This document shows positions 4,082 to 44,797 of a stretch of 64,000 bases of DNA, piece after piece. The DNA lies in the IMG/VR virus record IMGVR_UViG_3300045135_002615, positions 1 through 64,000 of that record; one strand, 5' to 3'. The position numbers and the translations under genes are program-made. Below the pieces are notes generated by a model. That model was given only the letters and a program-made list of their open reading frames with translations, searched no databases and was not told where the DNA came from. Each line of letters begins with the position of its first letter. Within the stretch, counting starts at the first letter, position 1.

Positions 4082-4885
4082 ATGAGCGGAACTAAGTACA
4101 ACTGGACATCTATTGAGAATGCGATTAAGAATGCGATTAAGCGAGAGGGGACGGACCCGACAGGGAGGGTGTTCATTTATGCAGACCTCCGTGGATTAGA
4201 CCTTAGTGGTCTTGACCTCAGCGGACTTGATCTCACCAAAGCTGACCTCAGAAAGGCTAAGCTCACAGGTGCGAACCTTGAGGGGACGGACCTCAGATGG
4301 GCTAACCTCAAGGGGGCGGATCTGAGCGGGGCTATCCTCACAGGGGCATCTCTCAGCGGGGTTAACCTCAGTGGGTTTAACCTCAGTGGGTTTAACCTAA
4401 CAGGTGCTAGTCTCTATAAAGCTAACCTCAAGGGTGCGAACCTGAAGGGTGCTGACCTCAGCGGGGCTTTCCTCGCGTGGGCTGAGCTCAAGGGGGCTGA
4501 TCTCACCAACGCTACCCTCACAGGTGCAGACCTAACTAAGGCGAAACTCAGAGGTCAAGACCTGAGTGGTCTTGACCTCAGTGGGGCTAACCTCAGATGG
4601 GCTAACATCAGAAAGGCTACTCTCATTGGTACTGACCTAACAGGTGCTATCCTTGAGGGGGCGTGGCTCACAGGGTCTAACTTCACGGGTGCTGACCTAA
4701 CAGGGGCTAACCTATCTAAGCTCAAAAGCTCATTCCTCAAAGAGACTAACTTCACGGGTGCGAACCTCAGTGGAGCGAACCTTACCAAATCTGACTTCAG
4801 CGGAGCTGACCTTACTGACGCTGACCTTACAGGTGCTGAGTTTAACAAGGTTGAAGAACCACTTCTTCTCTCTGATCTCTTATAA
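4082..4885 (+). CDS. pentapeptide repeat protein
   Basis: long run of A(D/N)L(S/T)G-type pentapeptides after a short N-terminal domain. Confidence 0.92.
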   Translation: MSGTKYNWTSIENAIKNAIKREGTDPTGRVFIYADLRGLDLSGLDLSGLDLTKADLRKAKLTGANLEGTDLRWANLKGADLSGAILTGASLSGVNLSGFNLSGFNLTGASLYKANLKGANLKGADLSGAFLAWAELKGADLTNATLTGADLTKAKLRGQDLSGLDLSGANLRWANIRKATLIGTDLTGAILEGAWLTGSNFTGADLTGANLSKLKSSFLKETNFTGANLSGANLTKSDFSGADLTDADLTGAEFNKVEEPLLLSDLL

Positions 4886-5003: not shown

Positions 5004-5459
5004 ATGAGACATCTAACCGCCAGTCAAAAAATCGCTCAACTTGAGCATCGCATCGCCCATCTTGAGAAAATGGGCTTTTTAACCCCAAGAGCAAAGAAGG
5101 ATCTACAATCAGCCTTATCTACAGCCAAGAAAAGCGGGTATGGCGATTTTGTAAGTGATATTAGTTACCTTTTGAAGGCTAAATCACCGGATGATTTCCA
5201 TAGCGTTTGGTACGACGCTTTTCATCGCTTAGATGGGCATAAAGCCAGCTTGTATCGTGAGATGGATTATTTAGAGAGTGAGGTGGTCTCCGAAATAGAT
5301 AAGACAGTACAGAAGCTCAATGTTCGTATCCAAAAAGCTCAGAAAAAAATACAAGAGCTCTCTAAGAAGAAAATGGAGAGTGAGAAGAGGATGGCGGAGA
5401 TTGAAAAAGAGTTGGAGCCCCTTGAGGAGATATACACACACCTTCAGAGCTTCGATTAA
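5004..5459 (+). CDS. hypothetical coiled-coil protein (N-terminus KIAQLEHRIAHLEKMG shared with 19496 ORF)
   Basis: AAGGAAGG RBS, 151 aa, heptad-rich C-terminus. Confidence 0.8.
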   Translation: MRHLTASQKIAQLEHRIAHLEKMGFLTPRAKKDLQSALSTAKKSGYGDFVSDISYLLKAKSPDDFHSVWYDAFHRLDGHKASLYREMDYLESEVVSEIDKTVQKLNVRIQKAQKKIQELSKKKMESEKRMAEIEKELEPLEEIYTHLQSFD

Positions 5460-5469
5460 TACACCCTTT

Positions 5470-5514
5470 ATGAAGCCCTCCCTATAGACGCATATACTCA
5501 TAGGAGGGCTTCAT
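5470..5514 (+). promoter_or_regulatory. RBS-sequestering hairpin upstream of the split-intein gene
   Basis: ATGAAGCCCTCC / GGAGGGCTTCAT 12-bp perfect core (plus CTAT/ATAG beyond a bulge); 3' arm contains GGAGG, ending 2 nt before ATG 5516; CTTTAT motif at 5466-5471. Confidence 0.6.
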
Positions 5515-5515
5515 C

Positions 5516-6019
5516 ATGGCTGTTGCCTTTAAACGTAATCAGATACTCACAAGAGGTGACCTCGACATCTTCCTCACTAACTCATCAGGGAATGTCGCTA
5601 ACGCCTCTAGTATCTCATACGCTCTATACTTCGTTGACCCTGGTCCACCCGAAACAGATGTACTCATCGGTGACCCCCAACGTATCCCCGAAAACCCATC
5701 TATCGGTGAATACTACGCATCCGTTCGTATCCCTACTACCGCTACCTATGGTCGCTATCGTATCCGATGGACCCTTAAAGAGTTTGTTAACTCAAACGCT
5801 CAGACCGTTGTCCAAGAGTTTGAAGTCGTCCCTGAGAACTCCGTGCTCGGTCCTGAGATGTCCAACGGCGAAAAACAAATGGTCTATAAGCTCCGTATGC
5901 TCCTAAGAGACCAATGCCTCGGTGGTGAGGAACAAATCACCATTGACGCTGATGGTGAAAAGATTACTCTCTCCATAGAGGAGCTATATGACATCATAGG
6001 GGAGACAGGCAATGCTTGA
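5516..6019 (+). CDS. fractured gene part 1: N-extein (133 aa, probable head-tail adaptor/neck protein) + split intein 1 N-fragment
   Basis: extein ends ...LRMLLRDQ, followed by intein block-A-like CLGGEEQITI and stop after 34 aa. Confidence 0.85.
   Translation: MAVAFKRNQILTRGDLDIFLTNSSGNVANASSISYALYFVDPGPPETDVLIGDPQRIPENPSIGEYYASVRIPTTATYGRYRIRWTLKEFVNSNAQTVVQEFEVVPENSVLGPEMSNGEKQMVYKLRMLLRDQCLGGEEQITIDADGEKITLSIEELYDIIGETGNA
5915..6016 (+). mobile_element. split intein 1, short N-fragment (34 aa)
   Basis: starts with Cys (CLGGEEQITIDADGEKITLSIEELYDII), acidic; parallels IntN2 (SVRGDT...KVKLTIEELHEII). Confidence 0.8.
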
Positions 6020-6113
6020 AGGACTGCTAACTAAGTTTGAACTCACAAGAGAGCAACTAAATAAAAAAGGTCGAGTCTCTAAAGAGATTGTAGAAAAGGA
6101 GCTTGGTCTATGA
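6012..6113 (+). CDS. 33-aa ORF inside the intein-1 split, possibly a remnant of a free-standing endonuclease gene
   Basis: MLEGLLTKFELTREQLNKKGRVSKEIVEKELGL*; overlaps stop of part 1 and ATGA-overlaps part 2; too short for the ORF track. Confidence 0.5.
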   Translation: MLEGLLTKFELTREQLNKKGRVSKEIVEKELGL

Positions 6114-6496
6114 CATCTCAAGAGAAAACACAGAAGATCAAAGATGCCTTCCAAAAAGGAAAACTCACCATCAAATCTATGGACTCTCAAGGTGAGTTCT
6201 CTTGGAAGCAAATCTCTAAAGCACACAAGAACCCGACACCAGTTGAACCCATATATAAAATCACCACTGAGCAAGGGAAGCAACTCATAGTCACAGGAGG
6301 GCATCGTGTGTATATGAGCCCTAACCTCTGTGTCCCCGCTGAAGATCTCTCTGTCGGTCTTAGCCTACAGACAACACAAGGCTTAACTAAGGTCTCCCAT
6401 ATCGAGGTCATACAAAACAGACCCTTTATGTTCGACCTGACCGTAGAGGATAACCATAACCTTGTACTAGAAGGTTCTGATGTGGTCGTACACAAC
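6110..6496 (+). mobile_element. split intein 1, long C-fragment (129 aa)
   Basis: TxxH, DLTV..NHN, terminal His-Asn followed by Cys+1; basic N-terminus; no endonuclease domain. Confidence 0.88.
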
Positions 6497-6880
6497 TGCC
6501 CTGATAAGTTTTACCATTTCAGACCTCCCGAGCATGAATCCAACATCGGATCATACAATCAAGTCTTCGGTCAAGTATGGGAAGATGCCGAGTTCCTTGA
6601 GTACCTTGAGAGAGCACTCGATTGGTGGAACCTCCAACCTCCCGAAACTGAGAACCTCTCAAATATGGATCAACTCATCTCTCAAAAGCCCGCATGGAGA
6701 ACTCCCATCCTTCAAGGTGCTATTCAGTTCGCTGCTATGGCTCTACAAGCAAATTGGATCGTGGACGAATTCTCGGTTAGGGGGGATACCGACTTAGAGG
6801 TATTACTCCCTAGTGGGGAGAAGGTTAAGCTCACGATTGAAGAACTTCATGAGATTATAAAAGAGGAGGGTGAGGAGTAA
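6110..6880 (+). CDS. fractured gene part 2: split intein 1 C-fragment + middle extein (92 aa) + split intein 2 N-fragment
   Basis: TGGH (block B), FMFDLTVEDNHNL (block F), VVHN/C (block G) at residues 129/130; C-terminal SVRGDT...IEELHEII intein N-fragment. Confidence 0.9.
   Translation: MTSQEKTQKIKDAFQKGKLTIKSMDSQGEFSWKQISKAHKNPTPVEPIYKITTEQGKQLIVTGGHRVYMSPNLCVPAEDLSVGLSLQTTQGLTKVSHIEVIQNRPFMFDLTVEDNHNLVLEGSDVVVHNCPDKFYHFRPPEHESNIGSYNQVFGQVWEDAEFLEYLERALDWWNLQPPETENLSNMDQLISQKPAWRTPILQGAIQFAAMALQANWIVDEFSVRGDTDLEVLLPSGEKVKLTIEELHEIIKEEGEE
6773..6877 (+). mobile_element. split intein 2, short N-fragment (35 aa, Ser1)
   Basis: SVRGDTDLEVLLPSGEKVKLTIEELHEII resembles block A (C/S-x-x-G-D-T) and aligns with IntN1. 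Confidence 0.78.
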
Positions 6881-7827
6881 TGTTGAAGCAAAGACACCTC
6901 ATAATGAAATACGGGTTTAACCAAAGGCACTTAAAGAGTTTGATTGAGGAGGGTATCCTTAAGACCTTGCCCACAGAGGGCAAACGTAAAGTACCCCTCA
7001 TAGACCCTGAAAGTTTTGAAAGTCTTTTAGAAGGGGTACACTACCTCTCATGTAAGGAGTGTGGGTCGAGGGTTGCTCAAGTGTCACCAATGCACTTGAA
7101 ATCTTGTTCAGGCTTGTCTTTAGACTCCTACTTTAAGAAGCACACGGATGCTCCATACATGTGTGAGTTCACAAAGAAGAACAAGAAGAAGTCAGAGGAG
7201 CAAAAGATAAGACAGTCCGAAACCCTCAAGGCAAGGTTCAAGACCCCTGAAGGCGAGATCACCCGAAGGCAGATTAGTGAAGCAAGTATAAAAATGCAAC
7301 AGAGTGAGGTGGGAGATCGCATCAAAGATGCTCTTAGAGAAAATAACAAAAACCCTATCTCTCTCGCTAAAAAGAGCAAAAAGTCTAAAGCAATGTGGGC
7401 TACCAAGTCCCATCAAGAAAAGATAAAAAAGTGGCACAAGGATAACCGAGATCAAGTCCTTGAAAGCTGTAAGTACGCAAGAGAACACATCTCCCACACT
7501 TACACAAAACCGCACCATACTTTGAAACAGATGCTTGTTTCAGAGGGTATCGAGACTTTGACTGAACATAGCGTTTCTCACTACCATATAGATGAAGCCA
7601 TACCTTCTCTCAAAATCGCTATAGAGGTTGATGGGTGTTATTGGCATGGGTGCGATGCCTGTGGGTTTACCCCCACAAAAAGAATCGCAGGGAATGATAA
7701 AGCCAAAAACACAAACCTATCTAAGCTAGGGTGGGCTGTGCTTAGGTTAAAAGAACACGAGGTCTATGGTGACCCTGACTCTTGTCTTGAAAGAATAAAA
7801 AACCTAATCCAGCAAAGGAGCGTATGA
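6880..7827 (+). CDS. free-standing Vsr/DUF559-like (PD-(D/E)xK) endonuclease, probable homing endonuclease
   Basis: C-terminal YHIDEAIPSLKIAIEVDGCYWHGC...DKAKN..L..LGWAVLRL.E; N-terminal CKECG..HL..C zinc motif and basic NUMOD3-like segments; lies between the halves of split intein 2. Confidence 0.85.
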   Translation: MLKQRHLIMKYGFNQRHLKSLIEEGILKTLPTEGKRKVPLIDPESFESLLEGVHYLSCKECGSRVAQVSPMHLKSCSGLSLDSYFKKHTDAPYMCEFTKKNKKKSEEQKIRQSETLKARFKTPEGEITRRQISEASIKMQQSEVGDRIKDALRENNKNPISLAKKSKKSKAMWATKSHQEKIKKWHKDNRDQVLESCKYAREHISHTYTKPHHTLKQMLVSEGIETLTEHSVSHYHIDEAIPSLKIAIEVDGCYWHGCDACGFTPTKRIAGNDKAKNTNLSKLGWAVLRLKEHEVYGDPDSCLERIKNLIQQRSV

Positions 7828-8231
7828 TGGACAACTCGACCAAACAAGCAATCAAGCAGGCTTTCTTACAAGGGGAGCTTAAAGTTCTCTCCGTAGATAA
7901 CGACACCAACCAAGTAGACTACCAAGTCATCTCGGATGTGATGAAGCATCATACTCCACATAAGAGAATACTTCGAGTAGAACTCGATAATGGTCAGTTC
8001 GTCATCGCTACCCAAGACCACTCCCTATTCACTATCGAAGAGGGTAAAATCAAAGCCATTGAAACAGATCAGTTTTCTGTTGGAGATACTCTCGCTATCG
8101 TTGAAGACGGTCAAGTCAAAGGGTGTCTTATCACTAACATCTCTCAAGAGGATGACTGCGAACACACTTATGACCTCTGTGTGCCTAGGAACGAAAACTT
8201 TGTGCTTGCTAACGGAATACTAGCCCACAAC
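7824..8231 (+). mobile_element. split intein 2, long C-fragment (136 aa)
   Basis: TxDH, YDL.V..NENF, terminal His-Asn followed by Ser+1; N-terminus (KQAIKQAFLQGEL) resembles IntC1 (QKIKDAFQKGKL). Confidence 0.88.
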
Positions 8232-8453
8232 TCGTATTCGATAGGTGGTATCAGCTTAGACTTAGACCGCTCCTCTAAGTATGAGTCTCTAAAGTCCACC
8301 GCTGAGTCCATGTGGTCTCAATCCGTTGAAGCAAAAGCACGCACTACCAAGTTTATGCGAGGTCTAAGGCAACCTAAATATGGTGTCGGTATTCGCAGTA
8401 GTTTTGGTCCTGCGGTTGGGCGAGGCGTTCTTTCACCGAGAAACTTTCTTTGA
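7824..8453 (+). CDS. fractured gene part 3: split intein 2 C-fragment + C-extein (73 aa)
   Basis: ATQDHSL (block B), TYDLCVPRNENFVLANGILAHN/S (blocks F, G); extein begins SYSIGGISLDL. Confidence 0.9.
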   Translation: MMDNSTKQAIKQAFLQGELKVLSVDNDTNQVDYQVISDVMKHHTPHKRILRVELDNGQFVIATQDHSLFTIEEGKIKAIETDQFSVGDTLAIVEDGQVKGCLITNISQEDDCEHTYDLCVPRNENFVLANGILAHNSYSIGGISLDLDRSSKYESLKSTAESMWSQSVEAKARTTKFMRGLRQPKYGVGIRSSFGPAVGRGVLSPRNFL

Positions 8454-8494
8454 TTTTTAGGGGTTTATCTTTGTAGAGACTCCGAAAAAAGTGC

Positions 8495-8524
8495 TTGACA
8501 TGCAAGTAAAGATTGGGGTATGTA
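8495..8524 (+). promoter_or_regulatory. sigma70-like promoter
   Basis: TTGACA (8495) - 18 nt - TATGTA; followed by AGAAAGGA RBS and ATG 8554. Confidence 0.45.
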
Positions 8525-8553
8525 TCTGAACTCAACCAAGAGAAAGGATACAT

Positions 8554-8724
8554 ATGTCAACTCATTGCCCTGCGTGTAAGAAGCAGGTGAGCCCAAAGGG
8601 GCTGCCAGGTCATATAAAAAAGTGCTCTCTATGGGACACCAAGATTGGGGTCCCATCATCAGAGTTCAACTTTGATGAATACTTCCAAAGGGGTTTGTAT
8701 GAGCCTCAAGGGTGCTACTTTTGA
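8554..8724 (+). CDS. small C2HC zinc-finger ORF (56 aa), possibly a truncated gene
   Basis: MSTHCPACKKQVSPKGLPGHIKKCSLW...; good RBS; below ORF-track cut-off; last codons overlap the next gene in another frame. Confidence 0.6.
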   Translation: MSTHCPACKKQVSPKGLPGHIKKCSLWDTKIGVPSSEFNFDEYFQRGLYEPQGCYF

Positions 8725-9634
8725 GGGTTGTCTTCTTGATGAGGTATTCTTCCACGAGTGTGACTCCTCATCACTTGAGGGTGTGGCCTTTGAGGGTTGT
8801 ACTTTGGGTGGTTACTTTGAGAAGTTCGAGGAGGCTACTTTCGTAGACTGCGAGGATGAGGACTACGAGGAAGACGAGGATGAGGTGGAAGTTGAGGACT
8901 TTCACGTTGACCTCTCGGAGTATGACATCTCGGAGTATGACATCTCGGAGATTGACCTCATCAAATTCATCGCTCAGCTCAAGGCGGAGCATGCCCCCGA
9001 AGCCCTACAGCTCACGGGGGCTGACCTCAGCGGTGCTGACCTCAGCGGAGCTGACCTCAGCGAGGTGGAGTTCTTCTCTGAGATTGACCTCACAGGGGCT
9101 AACCTCAGCGGTGCGAACCTCACTGATGCGTTCTTCGATGGGGTGAACCTCCGCGAGGCTGACCTCAGCGGTGCAAACCTCACGGGGGCGATCATCACGC
9201 CCGCCTCGCTCAAGCTCGCTAACCTCACAGGGGCTAACCTCAGCGGTGCTTGTCTCGGAGGCGACCTCTCAGGATCTAACCTCAGCGGTGCGACCTTGAC
9301 GGGGGCAGAGCTGATCGGTGCAACCCTGAAGGGTGCTGACCTCAGCGGTGCTGACCTGACGGGTGCGAACCTGAGCGGTGCGGACCTGACGGGTGCGGAC
9401 CTCTCAGGGGCTAAGCTCACAGGTGCTAAGCTCACTGAGGCTAACCTTGAGGGTGCTAACCTTGAGGGTGCTGACCTCACGGGGACTGACCTCACCCTCA
9501 CCAAGCTCGCTTATGGGGACTTGAGAGGGGTGACCCTCAAGGGTGCAGTCTTCGCCAACACCGACCTCACCAACGCCGACCTTGATGGTGTGAAACTCAC
9601 CAAGACCCAAATCAAGGCGGCGACCAAATCATAA
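8699..9634 (+). CDS. pentapeptide repeat protein with acidic N-terminal insert
   Basis: extensive ADLSG/ANLTG repeats; N-terminal part duplicates the C-terminus of the 9873 gene; frame open from 8645, ATG 8699 chosen. Confidence 0.9.
   Translation: MSLKGATFEGCLLDEVFFHECDSSSLEGVAFEGCTLGGYFEKFEEATFVDCEDEDYEEDEDEVEVEDFHVDLSEYDISEYDISEIDLIKFIAQLKAEHAPEALQLTGADLSGADLSGADLSEVEFFSEIDLTGANLSGANLTDAFFDGVNLREADLSGANLTGAIITPASLKLANLTGANLSGACLGGDLSGSNLSGATLTGAELIGATLKGADLSGADLTGANLSGADLTGADLSGAKLTGAKLTEANLEGANLEGADLTGTDLTLTKLAYGDLRGVTLKGAVFANTDLTNADLDGVKLTKTQIKAATKS
8769..8856 (+). repeat. 88-nt direct repeat, copy 1 (copy 2 at 10351-10438)
   Basis: CATCACTTGAGGGTGT..CCTTTGAGGGTTGT...GACTGCGAGGA, 85/88 identical by eye. 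Confidence 0.9.
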
Positions 9635-9872: not shown

Positions 9873-10496
9873 ATGTCAGACAAGAAGATTATAGATTTTG
9901 ATGAGTATGAGTGGAACTACGGCGACGATACCGTAAACTACGAAGGTCATGCTTTTTGGTTAAAGTTTGATGGTGACCTGACAGGTCACACCCTCACAGG
10001 GGCAACCATTGAGGGCACCCTCTTCAAGGGTGCGGATCTCAGGGGGGCAACCATTAAGGTAGAGGCTCTCACAGAGAGCCTCTTTGTGGATTGCAACCTT
10101 GAGGGTGCAACCCTCTCGGCAACTAATCGAGGCGTGAACCGCGTAGTCTGGACGGGCTGCAACCTTCGTGGTGCAACCATCAAGAACACCTGGCTTGATG
10201 GGGTATGCTTAAGGAACTGCGACCTTCGTGATGTAACATTCGAGGGCTGCTTATTTGATGTATATAATACTGTCCTTCTTCAAGATTGCAACCTGCAAGG
10301 TGCAACCTTTAAGGATTGCTCCTTGAGCTCTGATTTCGTTCTTCATGGGACATCACTTGAGGGTGTAACCTTTGAGGGTTGTACTTTGGGTGGTTACTTT
10401 GAGAAGTTCGAGGAGGCTACTTTCGTGGACTGCGAGGACAGGACTACGAGGACTACGAGGACTACGAGGATGACGAGGACTAAGAACCTCACCTAG
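9873..10496 (+). CDS. pentapeptide repeat protein (divergent), 3' end probably frameshifted
   Basis: ADLRG/CNLEG/ATFKD repeats; AAGGA RBS; tail reads RTTRTT where the alternative frame reads EDYEDYEDDED like the paralog. Confidence 0.85.
   Translation: MSDKKIIDFDEYEWNYGDDTVNYEGHAFWLKFDGDLTGHTLTGATIEGTLFKGADLRGATIKVEALTESLFVDCNLEGATLSATNRGVNRVVWTGCNLRGATIKNTWLDGVCLRNCDLRDVTFEGCLFDVYNTVLLQDCNLQGATFKDCSLSSDFVLHGTSLEGVTFEGCTLGGYFEKFEEATFVDCEDRTTRTTRTTRMTRTKNLT
10351..10438 (+). repeat. 88-nt direct repeat, copy 2
   Basis: see 8769-8856. Confidence 0.9.
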
Positions 10497-11141: not shown

Positions 11142-12248
11142 ATGAGACTAACAAAGATAGATACATGGGTAGACGAGCCAATCAATACAGACCATCCCTT
11201 ACTGATCTCTAGTGTTGATTGGGCTCACACAGAGCTTGTAGATCGTGTGAATATCCCACTTGGCTCTAATGTCCAAGTGGGGTGCTCTTCTTCAGAGGAG
11301 TTGGACATTGAGGTGTGGCTAGAAGAAGCCGTTACCGAGGTCACCCGACAGACCTCAGTAGAAGGTATGGGTACTAGGACTTATCTTGAGCAAGAGACAC
11401 AGATCAAAGTGTTGGGTACAACGATCAGATCAATTTCCCCTCGCCCTATTAGGGTCAAGAACCTTGATGATGACAAGCAGTACCTCCTAGTGACTTCAGA
11501 TCACTTTAAGATCATAGAGATAGAGGGGGCATCCCTCACACTTGAGGAACAAGTAAAGCTGTACAGGGTGACACACGGACTGAGTAAGGATTTGCAAGGT
11601 ATTAGCTTGTCTAACTGCAAGGTCCCCTTTGACCTTAGCGGGTGCGACTTGAGCGGTAGTTCATTTGATCAAGTGGACTTCTTAGGTGATCTAAGGGGAG
11701 CTAATCTATCAGGGACACACCTCACATATTGTGATTTAAAAGGGTTGAACATTGAAGGGGCTGACTTCAGCAACAGCACCCTTAATAGCGTTGACTTCTC
11801 CTGCTCTAGCTTAAAGGGTTCAACCTTTTTAGACGCGGATCTTGATAGCCCCCTCTTTGTAACGTGTTCACTTGAGGGGGTGGACTTCACAAAAGCCAGT
11901 TTTAATGGTGGTGACTTTACTTGTGCTCTTTGTGAGGGGGTGGACTTTAGTGGTCTTGAGTATAGTTATGACGAGAGCTTGTCTGATTGTCTCAACGGCT
12001 ATCTTAATGACCCTAGGCTCTTGTTTAGTTGGGCGGATTTGAGGCGGGCTAAGTTTGATGGGTTGTCTTTGAACCATGCTCAGTTTAATGGTGCTACCTT
12101 GACGGGGGCAACATTTAAGGATTGTGATCTTAGTTCATCAGAAGACGACTACAGAGATGGTCGTTATGAATACTATTCAGAGGGCACGAACTTCAAGGGT
12201 GCAGAGCTAGGTCTAAAATTAAGGGTCACTTTAAGGGCTTATTTATAA
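11142..12248 (+). CDS. pentapeptide repeat protein with unique N-terminal domain
   Basis: C-terminal CDLSG/ANLSG/ADFSN/VDFTK repeats. Confidence 0.88.
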   Translation: MRLTKIDTWVDEPINTDHPLLISSVDWAHTELVDRVNIPLGSNVQVGCSSSEELDIEVWLEEAVTEVTRQTSVEGMGTRTYLEQETQIKVLGTTIRSISPRPIRVKNLDDDKQYLLVTSDHFKIIEIEGASLTLEEQVKLYRVTHGLSKDLQGISLSNCKVPFDLSGCDLSGSSFDQVDFLGDLRGANLSGTHLTYCDLKGLNIEGADFSNSTLNSVDFSCSSLKGSTFLDADLDSPLFVTCSLEGVDFTKASFNGGDFTCALCEGVDFSGLEYSYDESLSDCLNGYLNDPRLLFSWADLRRAKFDGLSLNHAQFNGATLTGATFKDCDLSSSEDDYRDGRYEYYSEGTNFKGAELGLKLRVTLRAYL

Positions 12249-16168: not shown

Positions 16169-16272
16169 TGTTATAATAGAGGCGTAAGTGCTCACTTATA
16201 CACCGTGACAATAGACCAAGAAAGACACATCTAGACTAATGATTGGGTCTAGAAGAAAGAGAAAAATATAGT

Positions 16273-17202
16273 ATGACTAAGGCAGTGAAAACCGCTAAGC
16301 GTGGCAGAGGAGTGTCCCCAATATATCTAGATGAAGACGACCAAGCGAATCAGTCAAATGTTATTCACCCACGAGGTCGCAGACGAAAGAAAATAGTCTT
16401 CGGATGGTATGGCGGAAAGTTCTCTCATCTTGATTGGTTATTGCCTTTGCTACCCGAGTGTCATCACTACTGCGAACCCTTCTCAGGATCTGGTGCCGTG
16501 CTTATCAATCGTGATGCCTCGCCCGTTGAGACTTACAACGACATAGATGGTGACGTGGTGAATTTCTTCCGTGTGCTTCGTGACTCTCATGAAGAGCTGA
16601 TTAGGGCAATTTCCTTGACGCCATTTTCACGCGAAGAATACCACCATGCGATCAGTGGCGACACAAGTGGTATCAGTGACGTGGAACGGGCAAGAAGGTT
16701 CTACATAAAGGCTCGCCAGACTCGCACAGGGCTTGCTCAGACCGCATCACTTGGTCGTTGGGCGAACTGCAAAAACACGAGCCGATCAGGGATGTCCGGT
16801 GTTGTCTCCCGATGGCTTGGTGGCGTGAATGCACTGGACGAGATCGCCGAGCGACTTATTCGGGTGCAAATCGAAAACAGACCCGCTGTTGATGTAATCC
16901 GTCTGTATGACAGCCCCAAGACGCTTTTCTATTGTGACCCGCCCTATCTCCACGCAACACGAGGTGACGCTAAGGCTTACGGGTTCGAGATGGACGAGAG
17001 TCAGCATCGGGAATTTGCCAAAGCGGTTAATGAGTGCAAAGGTATGGTAGCTGTGTCTGGGTATGACCACCCGCTGATGGACGATCTCTTCAAACCCGAA
17101 CATTGGTTCAAGACCCAAGGTCCTGACAAAACGATCCACTCGACCAAGGGTAAAAGGTCAGAAGTCCTTTGGACAAACTATGACCCCAAGTTAAAACCAT
17201 AG
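16273..17202 (+). CDS. Dam-like (D12-class) DNA adenine methyltransferase
   Basis: WYGGKFSHL, CEPFSGSGAV, YNDIDGDVVNFF, FYCDPPY, EVLWTNY; start uncertain (frame open from 16243). Confidence 0.9.
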   Translation: MTKAVKTAKRGRGVSPIYLDEDDQANQSNVIHPRGRRRKKIVFGWYGGKFSHLDWLLPLLPECHHYCEPFSGSGAVLINRDASPVETYNDIDGDVVNFFRVLRDSHEELIRAISLTPFSREEYHHAISGDTSGISDVERARRFYIKARQTRTGLAQTASLGRWANCKNTSRSGMSGVVSRWLGGVNALDEIAERLIRVQIENRPAVDVIRLYDSPKTLFYCDPPYLHATRGDAKAYGFEMDESQHREFAKAVNECKGMVAVSGYDHPLMDDLFKPEHWFKTQGPDKTIHSTKGKRSEVLWTNYDPKLKP

Positions 17203-41896: not shown

Positions 41897-44797
41897 ATGA
41901 GTGAAGAAAAACTATTGAAGACAATTGAACGACTAAGAGAGATCAGGGCTAAAGAGGACTTGAACCCACCTCCCTCAAAAATCTTGAGGTCACATCTCCC
42001 TAATGGGGTAGAACTGAAGCTACGTCAGTATCAGATACAGGGTATCTTACACTTGATCGCCATGCCACGCTTTGTTTTGGGAGACGACACTGGGTTGGGG
42101 AAGTGCGTTACGGGAGACACCCTCATCTCTACAGATAAGGGGTTACTCCCAATTGCTTCTTTAAATCCTGGAGTGTCTGAACCTGACACATTCGTCCCTT
42201 TTGATGGCGATGCTCAAGTTGTTGTGAGAGGCGAAACCCGTAGGATAAGAAGCTTCTACTATGGTGGGCTTAAGCCTACAGTTAAGATCCGCACCCGCAG
42301 AGGATATGAGATTGAAGGGTCTCACATCCACCCCTTACTTGTTAGGGGTGAAGATGGCTCTGAGGATTGGGTGAAGATGTCTGATCTTAAAGAGGGCGAC
42401 ACCCTTTGTTTAAATCGAAGCTCTTATGTAAGTGAGTGCCACACAGTTAAACTCGTCCAAATACCTCAAGGACAACCTGGTGAAAAAAAATATCGTGTAC
42501 CACAGGTGCTTGATAGCAGACTAGCACGACTCTTTGGGTACCTTGTTTCTGAGGGTTGGTTCAACCATGACTATCATTTCAACGTGGCACAATGCTTGGA
42601 GAAGAACCCCGAAGTCTGTCGTGACATTGAGGACTGTTTTACGGCACTCTCTGACTATAAACCTAGATATGCAGATGGTGTCTACTCTATATCAAGCAGT
42701 TACCTCATACGCTTTTTAGAGGCACAAGGATTGACTAAAGGAGTCGCTAAAGATAAGGCGGTGCCTTTTTGTGTGTTAAGGGCAAACCCTTCTCTCCAAG
42801 CAGAGTTTTTAAAAGCCCTGTTTGAGGCTGAGGGACATGTATCTCAAGAGACGATTGAGATCAGTTCCGCTTCATCGACACTCCTAAAGCAAGTTCAAAC
42901 TATGCTTCTTAGCTTTGGGGTGCTCTCTACGAGAAGGGAAAAATATGTCAAAGGATACGACCACACATATTGGAGGCTAACCATTACGGGAGCGGACACT
43001 AAGTGCTTCATGTCTCAAATTGGTATGGTTAGCTCTCGTAAGATAGAGGCTCTTAAAAACATATGTTCTAAGATAGGTGGTAACACCAATCTAGATACTG
43101 TACCTCACACGAAGGAGCTATTTGAGAGGTATCGGCTCAAAGTCGCACACCCTACAAAACATGGCAACTCTTTTGTAGGGACTCTTGGTCATATCAGAGC
43201 AGAGAGACGCAATCCGAGCTACGACTTCATTCGCAAATGTGTCCGTGACATTCATGTTGACGGAGAACTTCAGGACATTCTAGCTAACAACTACTTCTAT
43301 GACCCGATTGTGGAGGTCACCTATGGTGAGGCAGAGGTTTTCGACATTGAGGTCGATCACCCAGAGCACTCATTTGTTGGGAACGGATTCGTATGTCACA
43401 ACACATTGCAGTCCATCGCAGCCCTCTCATATATTTGGGATAAGAACCCATCTATCCCCGCTCTCATCTGCACAACAAAGTCCGCCGTAGGGCAATGGGA
43501 ATCCGAGTTCGATAAGTTCACTCATGGGGTCAAGGTCTTTAAATGCCTCGGCACTAAAAAGAAGCGTGAAAAGATCCATAACGAGTTCAACCTCGCTGAA
43601 GGTCCAAAAGTGATCATCATGGGATACCGCACCGCTGTGCAAGACTTCCAATACATTCAACACATGGTAGGGCATGTTGTCATCTTTGATGAAGCTACCG
43701 CTTTTAAAAATGACACCTCTCAAGTCCATCAGGTGTGTAAGCACATGGCAGGGTCTGCCGAGCGTGTATGGTCTCTATCTGCGACCATCATCAAGAATAG
43801 GCTCATGGAAGCATGGGCTATCTACAAAGTCACAGTCCCTCACTTATTTGGTGCAAAGACACACTTCATGCGTGAGTATTGCATCACCCGTGATCAAACT
43901 ATACCTGGCTCTCGCCGCCGTATTCAGATTGTGGTGGGTCACAGGAAGCGTGACATCCAAGCCTTCCGTGAGCACATTGATGCTTATTTCTTAGGTCGCC
44001 CTAAACATGAGGTTGCTCAAGAGCTACCACCTCTCACAACTAAGATCATTGAATGTGAACTCTCTAAGGCTCAGAAGAACAAGTATGCAGAAGCCCTTCA
44101 AGGGTTACTTGAGTACCTAGACCCTGAGACAGGGGAGCTTGCCGAGCGTGAAGTAAGTAAGCTCACCGCAGTCACCGTCTGCCAACAGATTGTGAACCAC
44201 CCCGCCCTTGTAGATTGTGAGGGAGATAGCGGGAAGCTCGATACCCTCTTAGACTTGGTGACTAATGAACTTGAAGGTGAGAAGGTGATTGTGTTCTCTC
44301 GCTTCAGGGGTATGGTTGACATCTTAGAGGCGGAGCTCAATGGTAAGGGTATTCAGACCTGTCGTATCACGGGAGCTGAGTCGGGTGATGAGCGTTTAGC
44401 CTCTCAGAAGGCGTTTCAAGACCCTGAGAGTGAGACAAAGGTATGCCTCATCACAATGGCTGCCGCAGAGGGTGTAAATCTACAACTCGCTAAGGCGGTT
44501 ATCTTTTATGATACCCCTTGGTCAGCAGGAGACTACCTTCAAATCGTAGGTCGTATGATCCGTATTGGGTCTATCCATGACAAGGTGTTCAGCTATCACA
44601 TCTGTGCCCCTAAGACCATTGATGATAGAGTGATGAAAACCCTCAAAGCTAAGATGGGTCTTATCGAAGCGGTACTCGGTAAGAGGCTAAAGGAAGATGG
44701 TGAGTCAGACGCTATCGTAGAGGTAGGTCAATCTGAGCTGGCGGACATCTTTGACGGGCTTCTTGAGGATGCCCAAGAGATCATTAAGGTGAAGTGA
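41897..44797 (+). CDS. SNF2-family (SF2) helicase containing an intein
   Basis: LGDDTGLGK/T (Walker A, split by intein), IFDEA, SATIIKN, KVIVFS, AAAEGVNLQ, QIVGRMIRIG. Confidence 0.93.
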   Translation: MSEEKLLKTIERLREIRAKEDLNPPPSKILRSHLPNGVELKLRQYQIQGILHLIAMPRFVLGDDTGLGKCVTGDTLISTDKGLLPIASLNPGVSEPDTFVPFDGDAQVVVRGETRRIRSFYYGGLKPTVKIRTRRGYEIEGSHIHPLLVRGEDGSEDWVKMSDLKEGDTLCLNRSSYVSECHTVKLVQIPQGQPGEKKYRVPQVLDSRLARLFGYLVSEGWFNHDYHFNVAQCLEKNPEVCRDIEDCFTALSDYKPRYADGVYSISSSYLIRFLEAQGLTKGVAKDKAVPFCVLRANPSLQAEFLKALFEAEGHVSQETIEISSASSTLLKQVQTMLLSFGVLSTRREKYVKGYDHTYWRLTITGADTKCFMSQIGMVSSRKIEALKNICSKIGGNTNLDTVPHTKELFERYRLKVAHPTKHGNSFVGTLGHIRAERRNPSYDFIRKCVRDIHVDGELQDILANNYFYDPIVEVTYGEAEVFDIEVDHPEHSFVGNGFVCHNTLQSIAALSYIWDKNPSIPALICTTKSAVGQWESEFDKFTHGVKVFKCLGTKKKREKIHNEFNLAEGPKVIIMGYRTAVQDFQYIQHMVGHVVIFDEATAFKNDTSQVHQVCKHMAGSAERVWSLSATIIKNRLMEAWAIYKVTVPHLFGAKTHFMREYCITRDQTIPGSRRRIQIVVGHRKRDIQAFREHIDAYFLGRPKHEVAQELPPLTTKIIECELSKAQKNKYAEALQGLLEYLDPETGELAEREVSKLTAVTVCQQIVNHPALVDCEGDSGKLDTLLDLVTNELEGEKVIVFSRFRGMVDILEAELNGKGIQTCRITGAESGDERLASQKAFQDPESETKVCLITMAAAEGVNLQLAKAVIFYDTPWSAGDYLQIVGRMIRIGSIHDKVFSYHICAPKTIDDRVMKTLKAKMGLIEAVLGKRLKEDGESDAIVEVGQSELADIFDGLLEDAQEIIKVK
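42104..43402 (+). mobile_element. full-length intein with LAGLIDADG homing endonuclease (433 aa)
   Basis: CVTGDTLI start, GSHIHP block B, LFGYLVSEGW and FLKALFEAEG LAGLIDADG motifs, VFDIEV...CHN/T end. Confidence 0.93.

Follow-up and report, generated by a model that had tools for sequence, protein, structure and literature searches.

What protein can be made from a gene that lies in three pieces, the middle one carrying the C-terminal fragment of one intein at its beginning and the N-terminal fragment of another at its end? The question is raised by a locus in the IMG/VR virus record IMGVR_UViG_3300045135_002615, which, with 296,642 bp and an estimated completeness of 95%, stems from a marine jumbo phage; its first 64 kb (64,000 nucleotides) are the window analysed here. 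Four consecutive open reading frames (ORFs) on the (+) strand, namely ORF1, ORF2, an endonuclease gene and ORF3, occupy window 5516-8453. The initial annotation had described ORF2 as an intein C-terminal fragment (IntC), an extein and an intein N-terminal fragment (IntN), had called this arrangement SICLOPPS-like, and had argued that the two inteins must either be orthogonal or yield alternative products. The sequence shows that two distantly related class-1 mini-inteins entered the gene of a conserved protein of 298 amino acids (aa), one after Q133 and the other after F225, and that each was broken at an unusual position, behind its block-N2 helix, by a free-standing homing endonuclease (HE) gene bringing its own stop, ribosome-binding site and start codon. 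Tandem cognate trans-splicing by two largely orthogonal split inteins, giving the 298-aa protein, is the best explanation of the locus and in our judgement a likely one.

Under this explanation, three translationally coupled polypeptides of 167, 256 and 209 aa would be synthesized. IntN1 would pair with IntC1, ligating RDQ to CPDK, and IntN2 would pair with IntC2, ligating VDEF to SYSIGG, to give a mature 298-aa protein of 33.8 kDa. The computed masses are 33,817 Da for the ligated product, 10,854 Da for a cyclic form of the 92-aa middle extein and 22,963 Da for a skipped ORF1+ORF3 product; the three unspliced precursors would have 18.6, 29.2 and 23.3 kDa. The IntC-extein-IntN order of the middle gene would be a mere consequence of two independent split inteins residing in one gene.

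The three-piece gene and its two inteins

The intein/extein boundaries could be set to the residue by comparison with intein-free homologues of 295-300 aa (Table 1). The central 92 aa of ORF2, used as a query, retrieved 200 homologues at E<=1e-3, most of which are 295-300-aa proteins without an intein, and the middle extein matches the centre of intein-free 298-aa homologues at 96%-100%. Together the three exteins total 298 aa, 288 of them (96.6%) identical to the intein-free homologue P0002. Of the columns without variation in an alignment of 28 intein-free homologues, the window exteins keep every one (57/57, including 33/33 in the middle extein and 22/22 in the C-extein), and conservation of the host protein is highest in the middle extein. 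All three exteins are under the same constraint as in the intein-free homologues. The annotated architecture of ORF2, with IntC1 at the N-terminus and IntN2 at the C-terminus, is borne out by these boundaries and by the match to PF14890. Recomputation also returned the annotated sizes, 92 aa for the middle extein and 133+73 = 206 aa for a skipped ORF1+ORF3 product with the junction Q/SYS (here and below, a slash between residues marks the splice or insertion point).

Table 1. Coordinates and composition of the three-piece gene and the parts identified in it
Feature	Window position	Strand	Composition or evidence
ORF1	5516-6019	+	167 aa = 133-aa N-extein + 34-aa IntN1
ORF2	6110-6880	+	256 aa = IntC1 aa 1-129, extein aa 130-221, IntN2 aa 222-256
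ORF3	7824-8453	+	209 aa = 136-aa IntC2 + 73-aa C-extein
N-extein, 133 aa, ends LLRDQ	5516-5914	+	131/133 identical to intein-free P0002 residues 1-133
IntN1, 34 aa (Cys1, blocks A, N2) + TGA stop	5915-6019	+	begins CLGG right after homologue junction RDQ/x
HE1 remnant, 33 codons	6012-6113	+	overlaps ORF1 stop and ORF2 start; aligns to L008 TnsA-like HE gene
IntC1, 129 aa (blocks B, F, G; T62xxH65; terminal HN129)	6110-6496	+	PF14890 43.6 bits
Middle extein, 92 aa, Cys+1 ... VDEF	6497-6772	+	88/92 identical to P0002 residues 134-225
IntN2, 35 aa (Ser1, SVRGDT...) + TAA stop	6773-6880	+	starts exactly after homologue junction VDEF/x
HE2, predicted Vsr-like, 315 aa, intact free-standing gene	6880-7827	+	between halves of intein 2
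IntC2, 136 aa (T63xxH66, terminal HN136)	7824-8231	+	PF14890 58.6 bits
C-extein, 73 aa, Ser+1, SYSIGG... + stop	8232-8453	+	69/73 identical to P0002 residues 226-298

Each of the ORFs has its own ATG and an AGGAG-type Shine-Dalgarno sequence, and the stop/start overlaps between the ORFs (ATGA, TAATG) suggest translational coupling. Read-through of the ORF1 stop into a contiguous intein 1 was rejected as a candidate, as the spacer between ORF1 and ORF2 holds five in-frame stops.

Judged by sequence, both elements are class-1 mini-inteins split by free-standing HE genes, and protein splicing is predicted for both. PF14890 (Intein_splicing) scores above its cut-off of 35.8 bits in IntC1 as well as in IntC2. 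The first intein residue is Cys134 of ORF1 in IntN1 and Ser222 of ORF2 in IntN2. The block B motif TxxH reads T62-G-G-H65 in IntC1 and T63-Q-D-H66 in IntC2, the latter kept as (T/S)xDH in 23 alleles. The C-terminal ends are VVHN129/C130 in IntC1 and LAHN136/S137 in IntC2, whose 23 allelic homologues all end in AHN followed by (S/T)YS. Across 14 IntC-extein-IntN proteins that are 42-89% identical, T62, H65, D109, N129 and Ser222 are invariant. The +1 residue is Cys or Ser at site 1 and Ser at site 2 in intein-bearing alleles, whereas in intein-free alleles it is Asn at site 1 and Asp at site 2, in each case in 80/82 clusters; such a distribution is what a requirement for splicing would be expected to produce. 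Pseudogene formation or decay was rejected on the grounds that catalytic and extein invariants are all kept. P0002 has Ser at both +1 positions, unlike the 80/82 intein-free clusters with Asn and Asp, which may be the footprint of a precise loss of both inteins or a pre-adapted homing site.

Both inteins are naturally split, their N- and C-fragments lying on separate translation units. The break falls between block N2 and block B in each, leaving 34 and 35 aa in the two IntN fragments and the TxxH motif in IntC. In relatives with a contiguous intein 1 (P0001/L049, L012), IntN1 is fused in frame to IntC1, and IntN2 is fused to IntC2 in L008/L009.

The likeness between the two IntN motifs and between the two IntC starts, already noticed in the initial annotation, is real: IntN1 and IntN2 have 13/35 identical residues (37%), including GEK(I/V)xL(S/T)IEELxxII, and IntC1 and IntC2 have 36/137 (26%), including the N-terminal helix xIKxAFxxGxL. 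With IntC1 as the query, an exhaustive search by phmmer ranked site-1 alleles first, the nearest relatives of IntC1 being allelic inteins at the same host site; site-2 alleles followed at E values of 3e-8 to 1e-5, mixed with inteins of unrelated large proteins. In a maximum-likelihood tree of 71 IntC sequences with a midpoint root, the site-2 inteins form one clade (support 98/93) nested within the site-1 diversity, while intein 1 of the window falls in a distant clade near this root. Also placed in the site-2 clade are a single site-1 row on a long branch and three inteins whose insertion contexts are shifted or divergent. The two inteins are thus old relatives within one subfamily, with the N-terminal IntC helix and the IntN helix in common, and neither is a recent copy of the other. 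That one of them was recently duplicated into the second site was rejected on the basis of the 26-37% identity and of the nearest relatives of IntC1, which are all site-1 alleles. IntN1 and IntN2 of one genome are 37% identical in the window and 26% identical in L047, against 26-31% between genomes, and this comparison gave no signal of selection for orthogonality.

In three more distant host homologues, P0181, P0177 and P0169, a site-2-clade intein ending in AHN adjoins /SF(x)PP. The position appears to be a shifted one near site 1, which suggests that an intein has moved ectopically from one site of the gene to another. P0181 carries the shifted site-2-clade intein together with a site-2 intein.

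Homing endonucleases and variation among relatives

The gene that separates the halves of intein 2, HE2, matches the Pfam families MTES_1575 (38.5 bits), DUF559 (32.3 bits) and Vsr (29.7 bits, cut-off 27) as well as PHROG endonuclease and homing-endonuclease families, and it carries an EVDGCYWH motif. It is predicted to be an intact Vsr-like homing endonuclease, with relatives of 69-91% identity in L014-L017. At the position of the ORF1/ORF2 spacer of the window, L008 has a gene for a 291-aa TnsA-like endonuclease (PF08722). The spacer, 90 nucleotides (nt) in the window, matches the L008 gene over its first ~90 nt and its last ~20 nt, which are joined at a GAAAAG microhomology. Since the spacer consists of the joined ends of such a gene, HE1 was lost by internal deletion, leaving the split intein without an endonuclease. 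An intact TnsA-like HE1 is present in L008, L010 and L047.

The mirror case is found in L049 (4252-4330; also in L050), where a 79-nt spacer is made up of the 5' ~50 nt and the 3' ~35 nt of a Vsr-like gene; in L049, intein 2 is split and intein 1 is contiguous. The first ATG of IntC2 in L049 has become CTG, and the second ATG is used. Contiguous forms of the inteins that are split in the window are seen in L008 (5001-6392) and L012 (4533-5885). The IntC2 part of the contiguous intein 2 of L008 is 89% identical to IntC2 of the window; its join reads KEE-R-MMDN, and the Met-Met that starts the split IntC2 is still there.

Classification covered 39 IMG/VR loci, 4 contigs added through look-ups of exact proteins and some 240 protein clusters. 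The two insertion sites do not change in position, but their occupancy is freely variable among relatives, which show almost every combination of empty, contiguous, split with HE and split with HE remnant. Neither site holds an intein in 28 loci and in 82 of the best 120 clusters (90% identity). Intein 1 occurs alone both in a form split with an HE (L010, L011) and in a contiguous form (L012), and intein 2 occurs alone and split with an HE in L013-L017. Loci with both inteins are similarly diverse. In L008 and L009, intein 1 is split with an HE and intein 2 is contiguous, one 463-aa ORF comprising IntC1, the middle extein, the entire intein 2 and the C-extein. P0001/L049 and P0022 combine a contiguous intein 1 with a split intein 2, and both inteins are contiguous in P0161. 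Both are split, with both endonucleases intact, in L047 and the P0087 contig. L048 has ORF2, HE2 and ORF3 as in the window, the ORF at the HE1 position being cut by the contig end.

IntC-extein-IntN proteins account for 7 (and one partial) of the best 120 clusters at 90% identity, and for at least 7 clusters at 50% identity. Doubly split clusters number 8, with about 4 expected under site independence, a rough comparison given that clusters are not independent samples. A depletion of doubly split alleles, which would be a sign of harmful cross-reaction, was sought in the best 120 clusters and was not seen.

Two sequencing runs add to this picture. In a wetland metagenome run, a related population has an allele that lacks intein 1 and whose join coincides exactly with the beginning of the middle extein (window 6499). 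In a metatranscriptome run, contigs from the RNA library of a relative cover HE2 and IntC2 (window 7533-8193), a weak hint of HE2/IntC2 transcription in this relative, with DNA carry-over being possible.

Proposed cognate pairing and the alternatives to it

The either/or of the initial annotation, orthogonal inteins or alternative products, is sound, and its orthogonal branch is favoured by the divergence of the two inteins, their independent occurrence and a model of all four fragments; the branch of alternative products is a less likely possibility. The comparison with SICLOPPS holds for the gene order and fails for identity with that system, as the halves that flank the middle extein come from two different inteins.

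The four-fragment model was obtained with ESMFold2 from IntN1, IntC1, IntC2 and IntN2 as separate chains. IntN2 reached an ipSAE of 0.61, a mark attained by 51/78 solved complexes and by 2/108 mismatched pairs, whereas the best control gave 0.01. Contact agreement in the ESMFold2 runs was at least 82% and partner pLDDT at least 71. All confident contacts of IntN2 in this prediction are with IntC2 and none with IntC1, and when IntC2 was replaced, the IntN2 score was 0.01, although IntC1 was still in the model. The model thus supports a cognate binding of IntN2 and IntC2. The order of synthesis would probably aid orthogonality as well, IntN1 being already made upstream and IntC1 leaving the ribosome ~130 residues before IntN2.

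Several points weigh against such clean separation, and most of them speak for a biologically relevant cross-reaction, in which IntN2 and IntC1 would cyclise the 92-aa extein and IntN1 and IntC2 would give the 206-aa skipped protein, yielding alternative isoforms. In the ESMFold2 control, IntC1 was probably held by IntN1 and not free for IntN2. In both inteins the same residues make up the hydrophobic core of the interface (I10, A13 and F14 in IntC; V/I, L, I, L, I and I in IntN), both IntN fragments are strongly acidic with net charges of -8 and -7, and IntC1 is basic at its start. With the hydrophobic interface residues common to both inteins and both IntN fragments acidic, an association of non-cognate halves is plausible. 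Moreover, IntN2 and IntC1 are part of one chain, which implies a high effective concentration. AlphaFold2, given ORF2 alone, folds IntN2 with a pLDDT of 76-87, and its strands 228-232 and 238-242 and helix 243-251 are the elements that pair in the cognate complex. The prediction hints that IntN2 could complement IntC1 in cis within ORF2, and the docking stays a hint because the prediction gives no contacts. Residual cross-interaction has been described mostly among inteins that are split into one short fragment (Pinto et al. 2020, PMC7090010), and both inteins of the window are split in this manner.

Nevertheless, we regard a cross-reaction of biological relevance as unlikely. The inteins are only 26-37% identical and belong to separate clades, and the competition model pairs IntN2 with IntC2 only. 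The relatives are mostly intein-free (82/120 clusters) or carry a single intein, which means that a cyclic or skipped product is no conserved function. No other part of the host protein is as conserved as the middle extein, and a skipped protein would therefore probably be non-functional. If dead-end products caused heavy losses, the doubly split state would hardly be as common and long-lived as it is. The evidence as a whole leans towards two largely orthogonal inteins, with the low identity, the separate clades, the independent occurrence, the persistence of the doubly split state, the conserved exteins and the ESMFold2 model all pointing this way. Minor cyclic or skipped by-products are possible; as a selected function they are unlikely, because most relatives lack one or both inteins.

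We also considered a partial version of this process, in which some ORF2 in infected cells would cyclise itself through IntC1 and IntN2 into a natural backbone-cyclic 92-aa protein, accompanied by the 206-aa extein-skipped ORF1+ORF3 protein. We hold this to be decidedly unlikely. If true, intein cross-talk would bring about alternative splicing at the protein level, and the order and ratio in which the three cistrons are translated might tune it. Cross-talk and cyclisation between related inteins are directly testable in this natural system.

Compared with tandem cognate trans-splicing, it is very unlikely that the inteins do not splice at all, the three polypeptides assembling non-covalently with the intein halves as mere dimerisation handles, or the gene decaying. 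The host protein probably belongs to a multimeric virion assembly, in which nicks could be tolerated, and HE1 is already degraded in the phage of the window. However, Cys1/Ser1, TxxH, the block-F Asp, the terminal Asn and the Cys/Ser at +1 are intact and invariant in the 14 orthologues, the restriction of Cys/Ser +1 to intein-bearing alleles is the signature expected of active splicing, and the exteins keep every invariant residue of the host family.

It is extremely improbable that the locus is an artefact of chimeric metagenome assembly or of stop codons due to sequencing errors: although the window is a metagenome-assembled viral contig and the one run that holds it completely is probably its own source, the ORF2 architecture and the flanking genes recur in L047, L048 and the P0087 contig, the same 256-aa architecture comes from independent assemblies of other samples (JGI, ENA, Logan), the spacers are recognisable endonuclease genes or remnants instead of random stops, and a ribosome-binding site precedes every piece.

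Known systems, host protein and setting

The closest known arrangement is that of fractured genes, phage genes broken by a split intein with a free-standing HE gene between the halves (Dassa et al. 2009, PMC2677866). Both cases have a phage gene, a split intein and an intervening free-standing HE with its own expression signals; the Vsr-like HE family was first described in that study, and HE2 belongs to the same family; and the HE-less locus gp41-7 among them finds its counterpart in the HE-less split intein 1 of the window. In contrast to fractured genes, the gene described here is broken twice, giving a middle IntC-extein-IntN gene; the split site leaves a short IntN and is not the canonical endonuclease-domain site; the host protein is probably structural instead of an enzyme of DNA metabolism; the second endonuclease is TnsA-like; and endonuclease remnants document the step to an HE-less split intein. 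The relatives show every stage at two sites, from empty through contiguous mini-intein and HE-fractured to HE-less split with remnants, which supports the proposal that split inteins arise via fractured genes.

Inteins split atypically with a short N-fragment reportedly include AceL-TerL/GOS-TerL and VidaL (PDB 6vgv). The inteins of the window resemble this type in having an IntN of ~25-35 aa with blocks A and N2, in carrying everything from block B onward in IntC, and in their environmental, phage-like origin. They differ from it in their host gene and in standing in tandem in one protein, one with Cys1/Cys+1 and the other with Ser1/Ser+1. Kinship to VidaL 6vgv is weak (E=0.28), and the best PDB matches are other inteins (E 3e-4 to 0.04). 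In SICLOPPS, IntC, target and IntN are said to follow one another in one polypeptide as halves of the same intein, with cyclisation as the designed outcome. ORF2 has the same order in one polypeptide, but its halves stem from two inteins, the cognate partners of which are encoded on ORF1 and ORF3.

Tandem trans-splicing with orthogonal split inteins has reportedly been engineered as well. Further man-made examples are the joining of three fragments by orthogonal split inteins (Pinto et al. 2020, PMC7090010) and protein transposition (PMC11185735). Three-fragment ligation uses a middle piece of the form IntC(a)-X-IntN(b), and orthogonal pairs join three pieces in a defined order, as proposed here. 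Unlike the engineered systems, which are man-made and employ unrelated inteins, the window presents a natural arrangement in one operon with two related inteins of one subfamily. The DnaE gene of Trichodesmium has several inteins, one of them split. Multiple inteins in one host gene are thus common to both cases; the additional inteins of DnaE are contiguous, and no polypeptide there is known to have IntC at one end and IntN at the other. The nearest hint of a precedent is an incomplete DnaE-1 locus (Dassa et al. 2009, PMC2677866). Searches of full-text literature outside subscription journals yielded engineered systems only and no natural three-piece or IntC-X-IntN case.

Vsr-like HE-split inteins (fractured genes), short-IntN split inteins and HE-less split inteins are therefore each known singly. 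The locus appears to be the first natural case on record in which the products of three genes are put together into one protein by two split inteins. A natural IntC-extein-IntN polypeptide that derives from two split inteins in one gene and recurs across a phage family likewise appears to be new, as do a TnsA-like endonuclease in an intein-splitting role and endonuclease remnants at both sites that record the passage from fractured gene to HE-less split intein. In nature, the arrangement would correspond to the tandem trans-splicing of engineered systems. Two short-IntN inteins, one Cys-dependent and one of the Ser1/Ser+1 type, have co-evolved here in one cell, and together with dozens of allelic variants they provide candidates for orthogonal pairs to be used in multi-fragment ligation and labelling.

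The host protein had no match in Pfam or PHROGs, and its family profile had none among PDB sequences. Because there is no sequence-family match, its function is approached through fold and language-model leads alone. The AlphaFold2 model of an intein-free homologue is mediocre (pLDDT 63.5). Residues 1-110 form an immunoglobulin (Ig)/macroglobulin-like beta-sandwich (VIA-align Z 8.5-9.5 to macroglobulin/Ig-like domains), the predicted strands lying within residues 1-105, and the N-extein also holds the first adaptor helix; Foldseek found BppU and baseplate matches for this N-domain. Residues ~117-295 of the same weak model align at Z 7.1-8.2 to 8 portal-tail, neck or connector chains, including the P1 connector, T4 gp13, the SU10 adaptor, the Mu neck subunit and several portal-tail complexes. 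A language-model search returned SU10_adaptor, T4 gp13, Mu gp36 and gp6-connector at 0.82-0.89, and BppU_N too. With moderate confidence, the host protein is probably a virion neck or head-tail adaptor-like protein with an extra N-terminal Ig-like domain. Inteins usually insert in invariant motifs, and both insertion sites lie within such motifs, RDQ/xPDKFYHFRPP and NWIVDEF/xYSIGG.

DNA nearly identical to the window is present in a seawater metagenome, and more distant relatives occur in marine, estuary and wetland samples. One contig of a seawater run spans the whole stretch with 0 differences at 17.5x and is probably the source assembly. A nucleotide search with window 5400-8600 against GenBank phages gave 0 matches. 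Most neighbours of the three-piece gene are without a Pfam or PHROG match, and ten large ORFs near it matched neither collection. On the (-) strand, window 27371-63988 holds a series of very large ORFs of 760, 1364, 1076, 1719, 1879 and 1062 aa, without a Pfam match at E<=1e-4. Pentapeptide-repeat proteins are encoded on either side of the three-piece gene (4082-4885 and 8645-9634, both (+); Pfam Pentapeptide, E 1e-65 to 1e-69), and the ORFs at 9873-10496 and 11142-12248 have PHROG families of unknown function in common. A DNA methyltransferase gene is located at 16243-17202 (+) (PHROG 56, E 2e-68). Further inteins are indicated elsewhere in the record: a gene for a 966-aa SNF2-family helicase (41897-44797, (+)) holds a contiguous intein with a LAGLIDADG endonuclease domain (PF14890 and PF14528), and another intein-like match lies beyond the window at genome position ~193,466.

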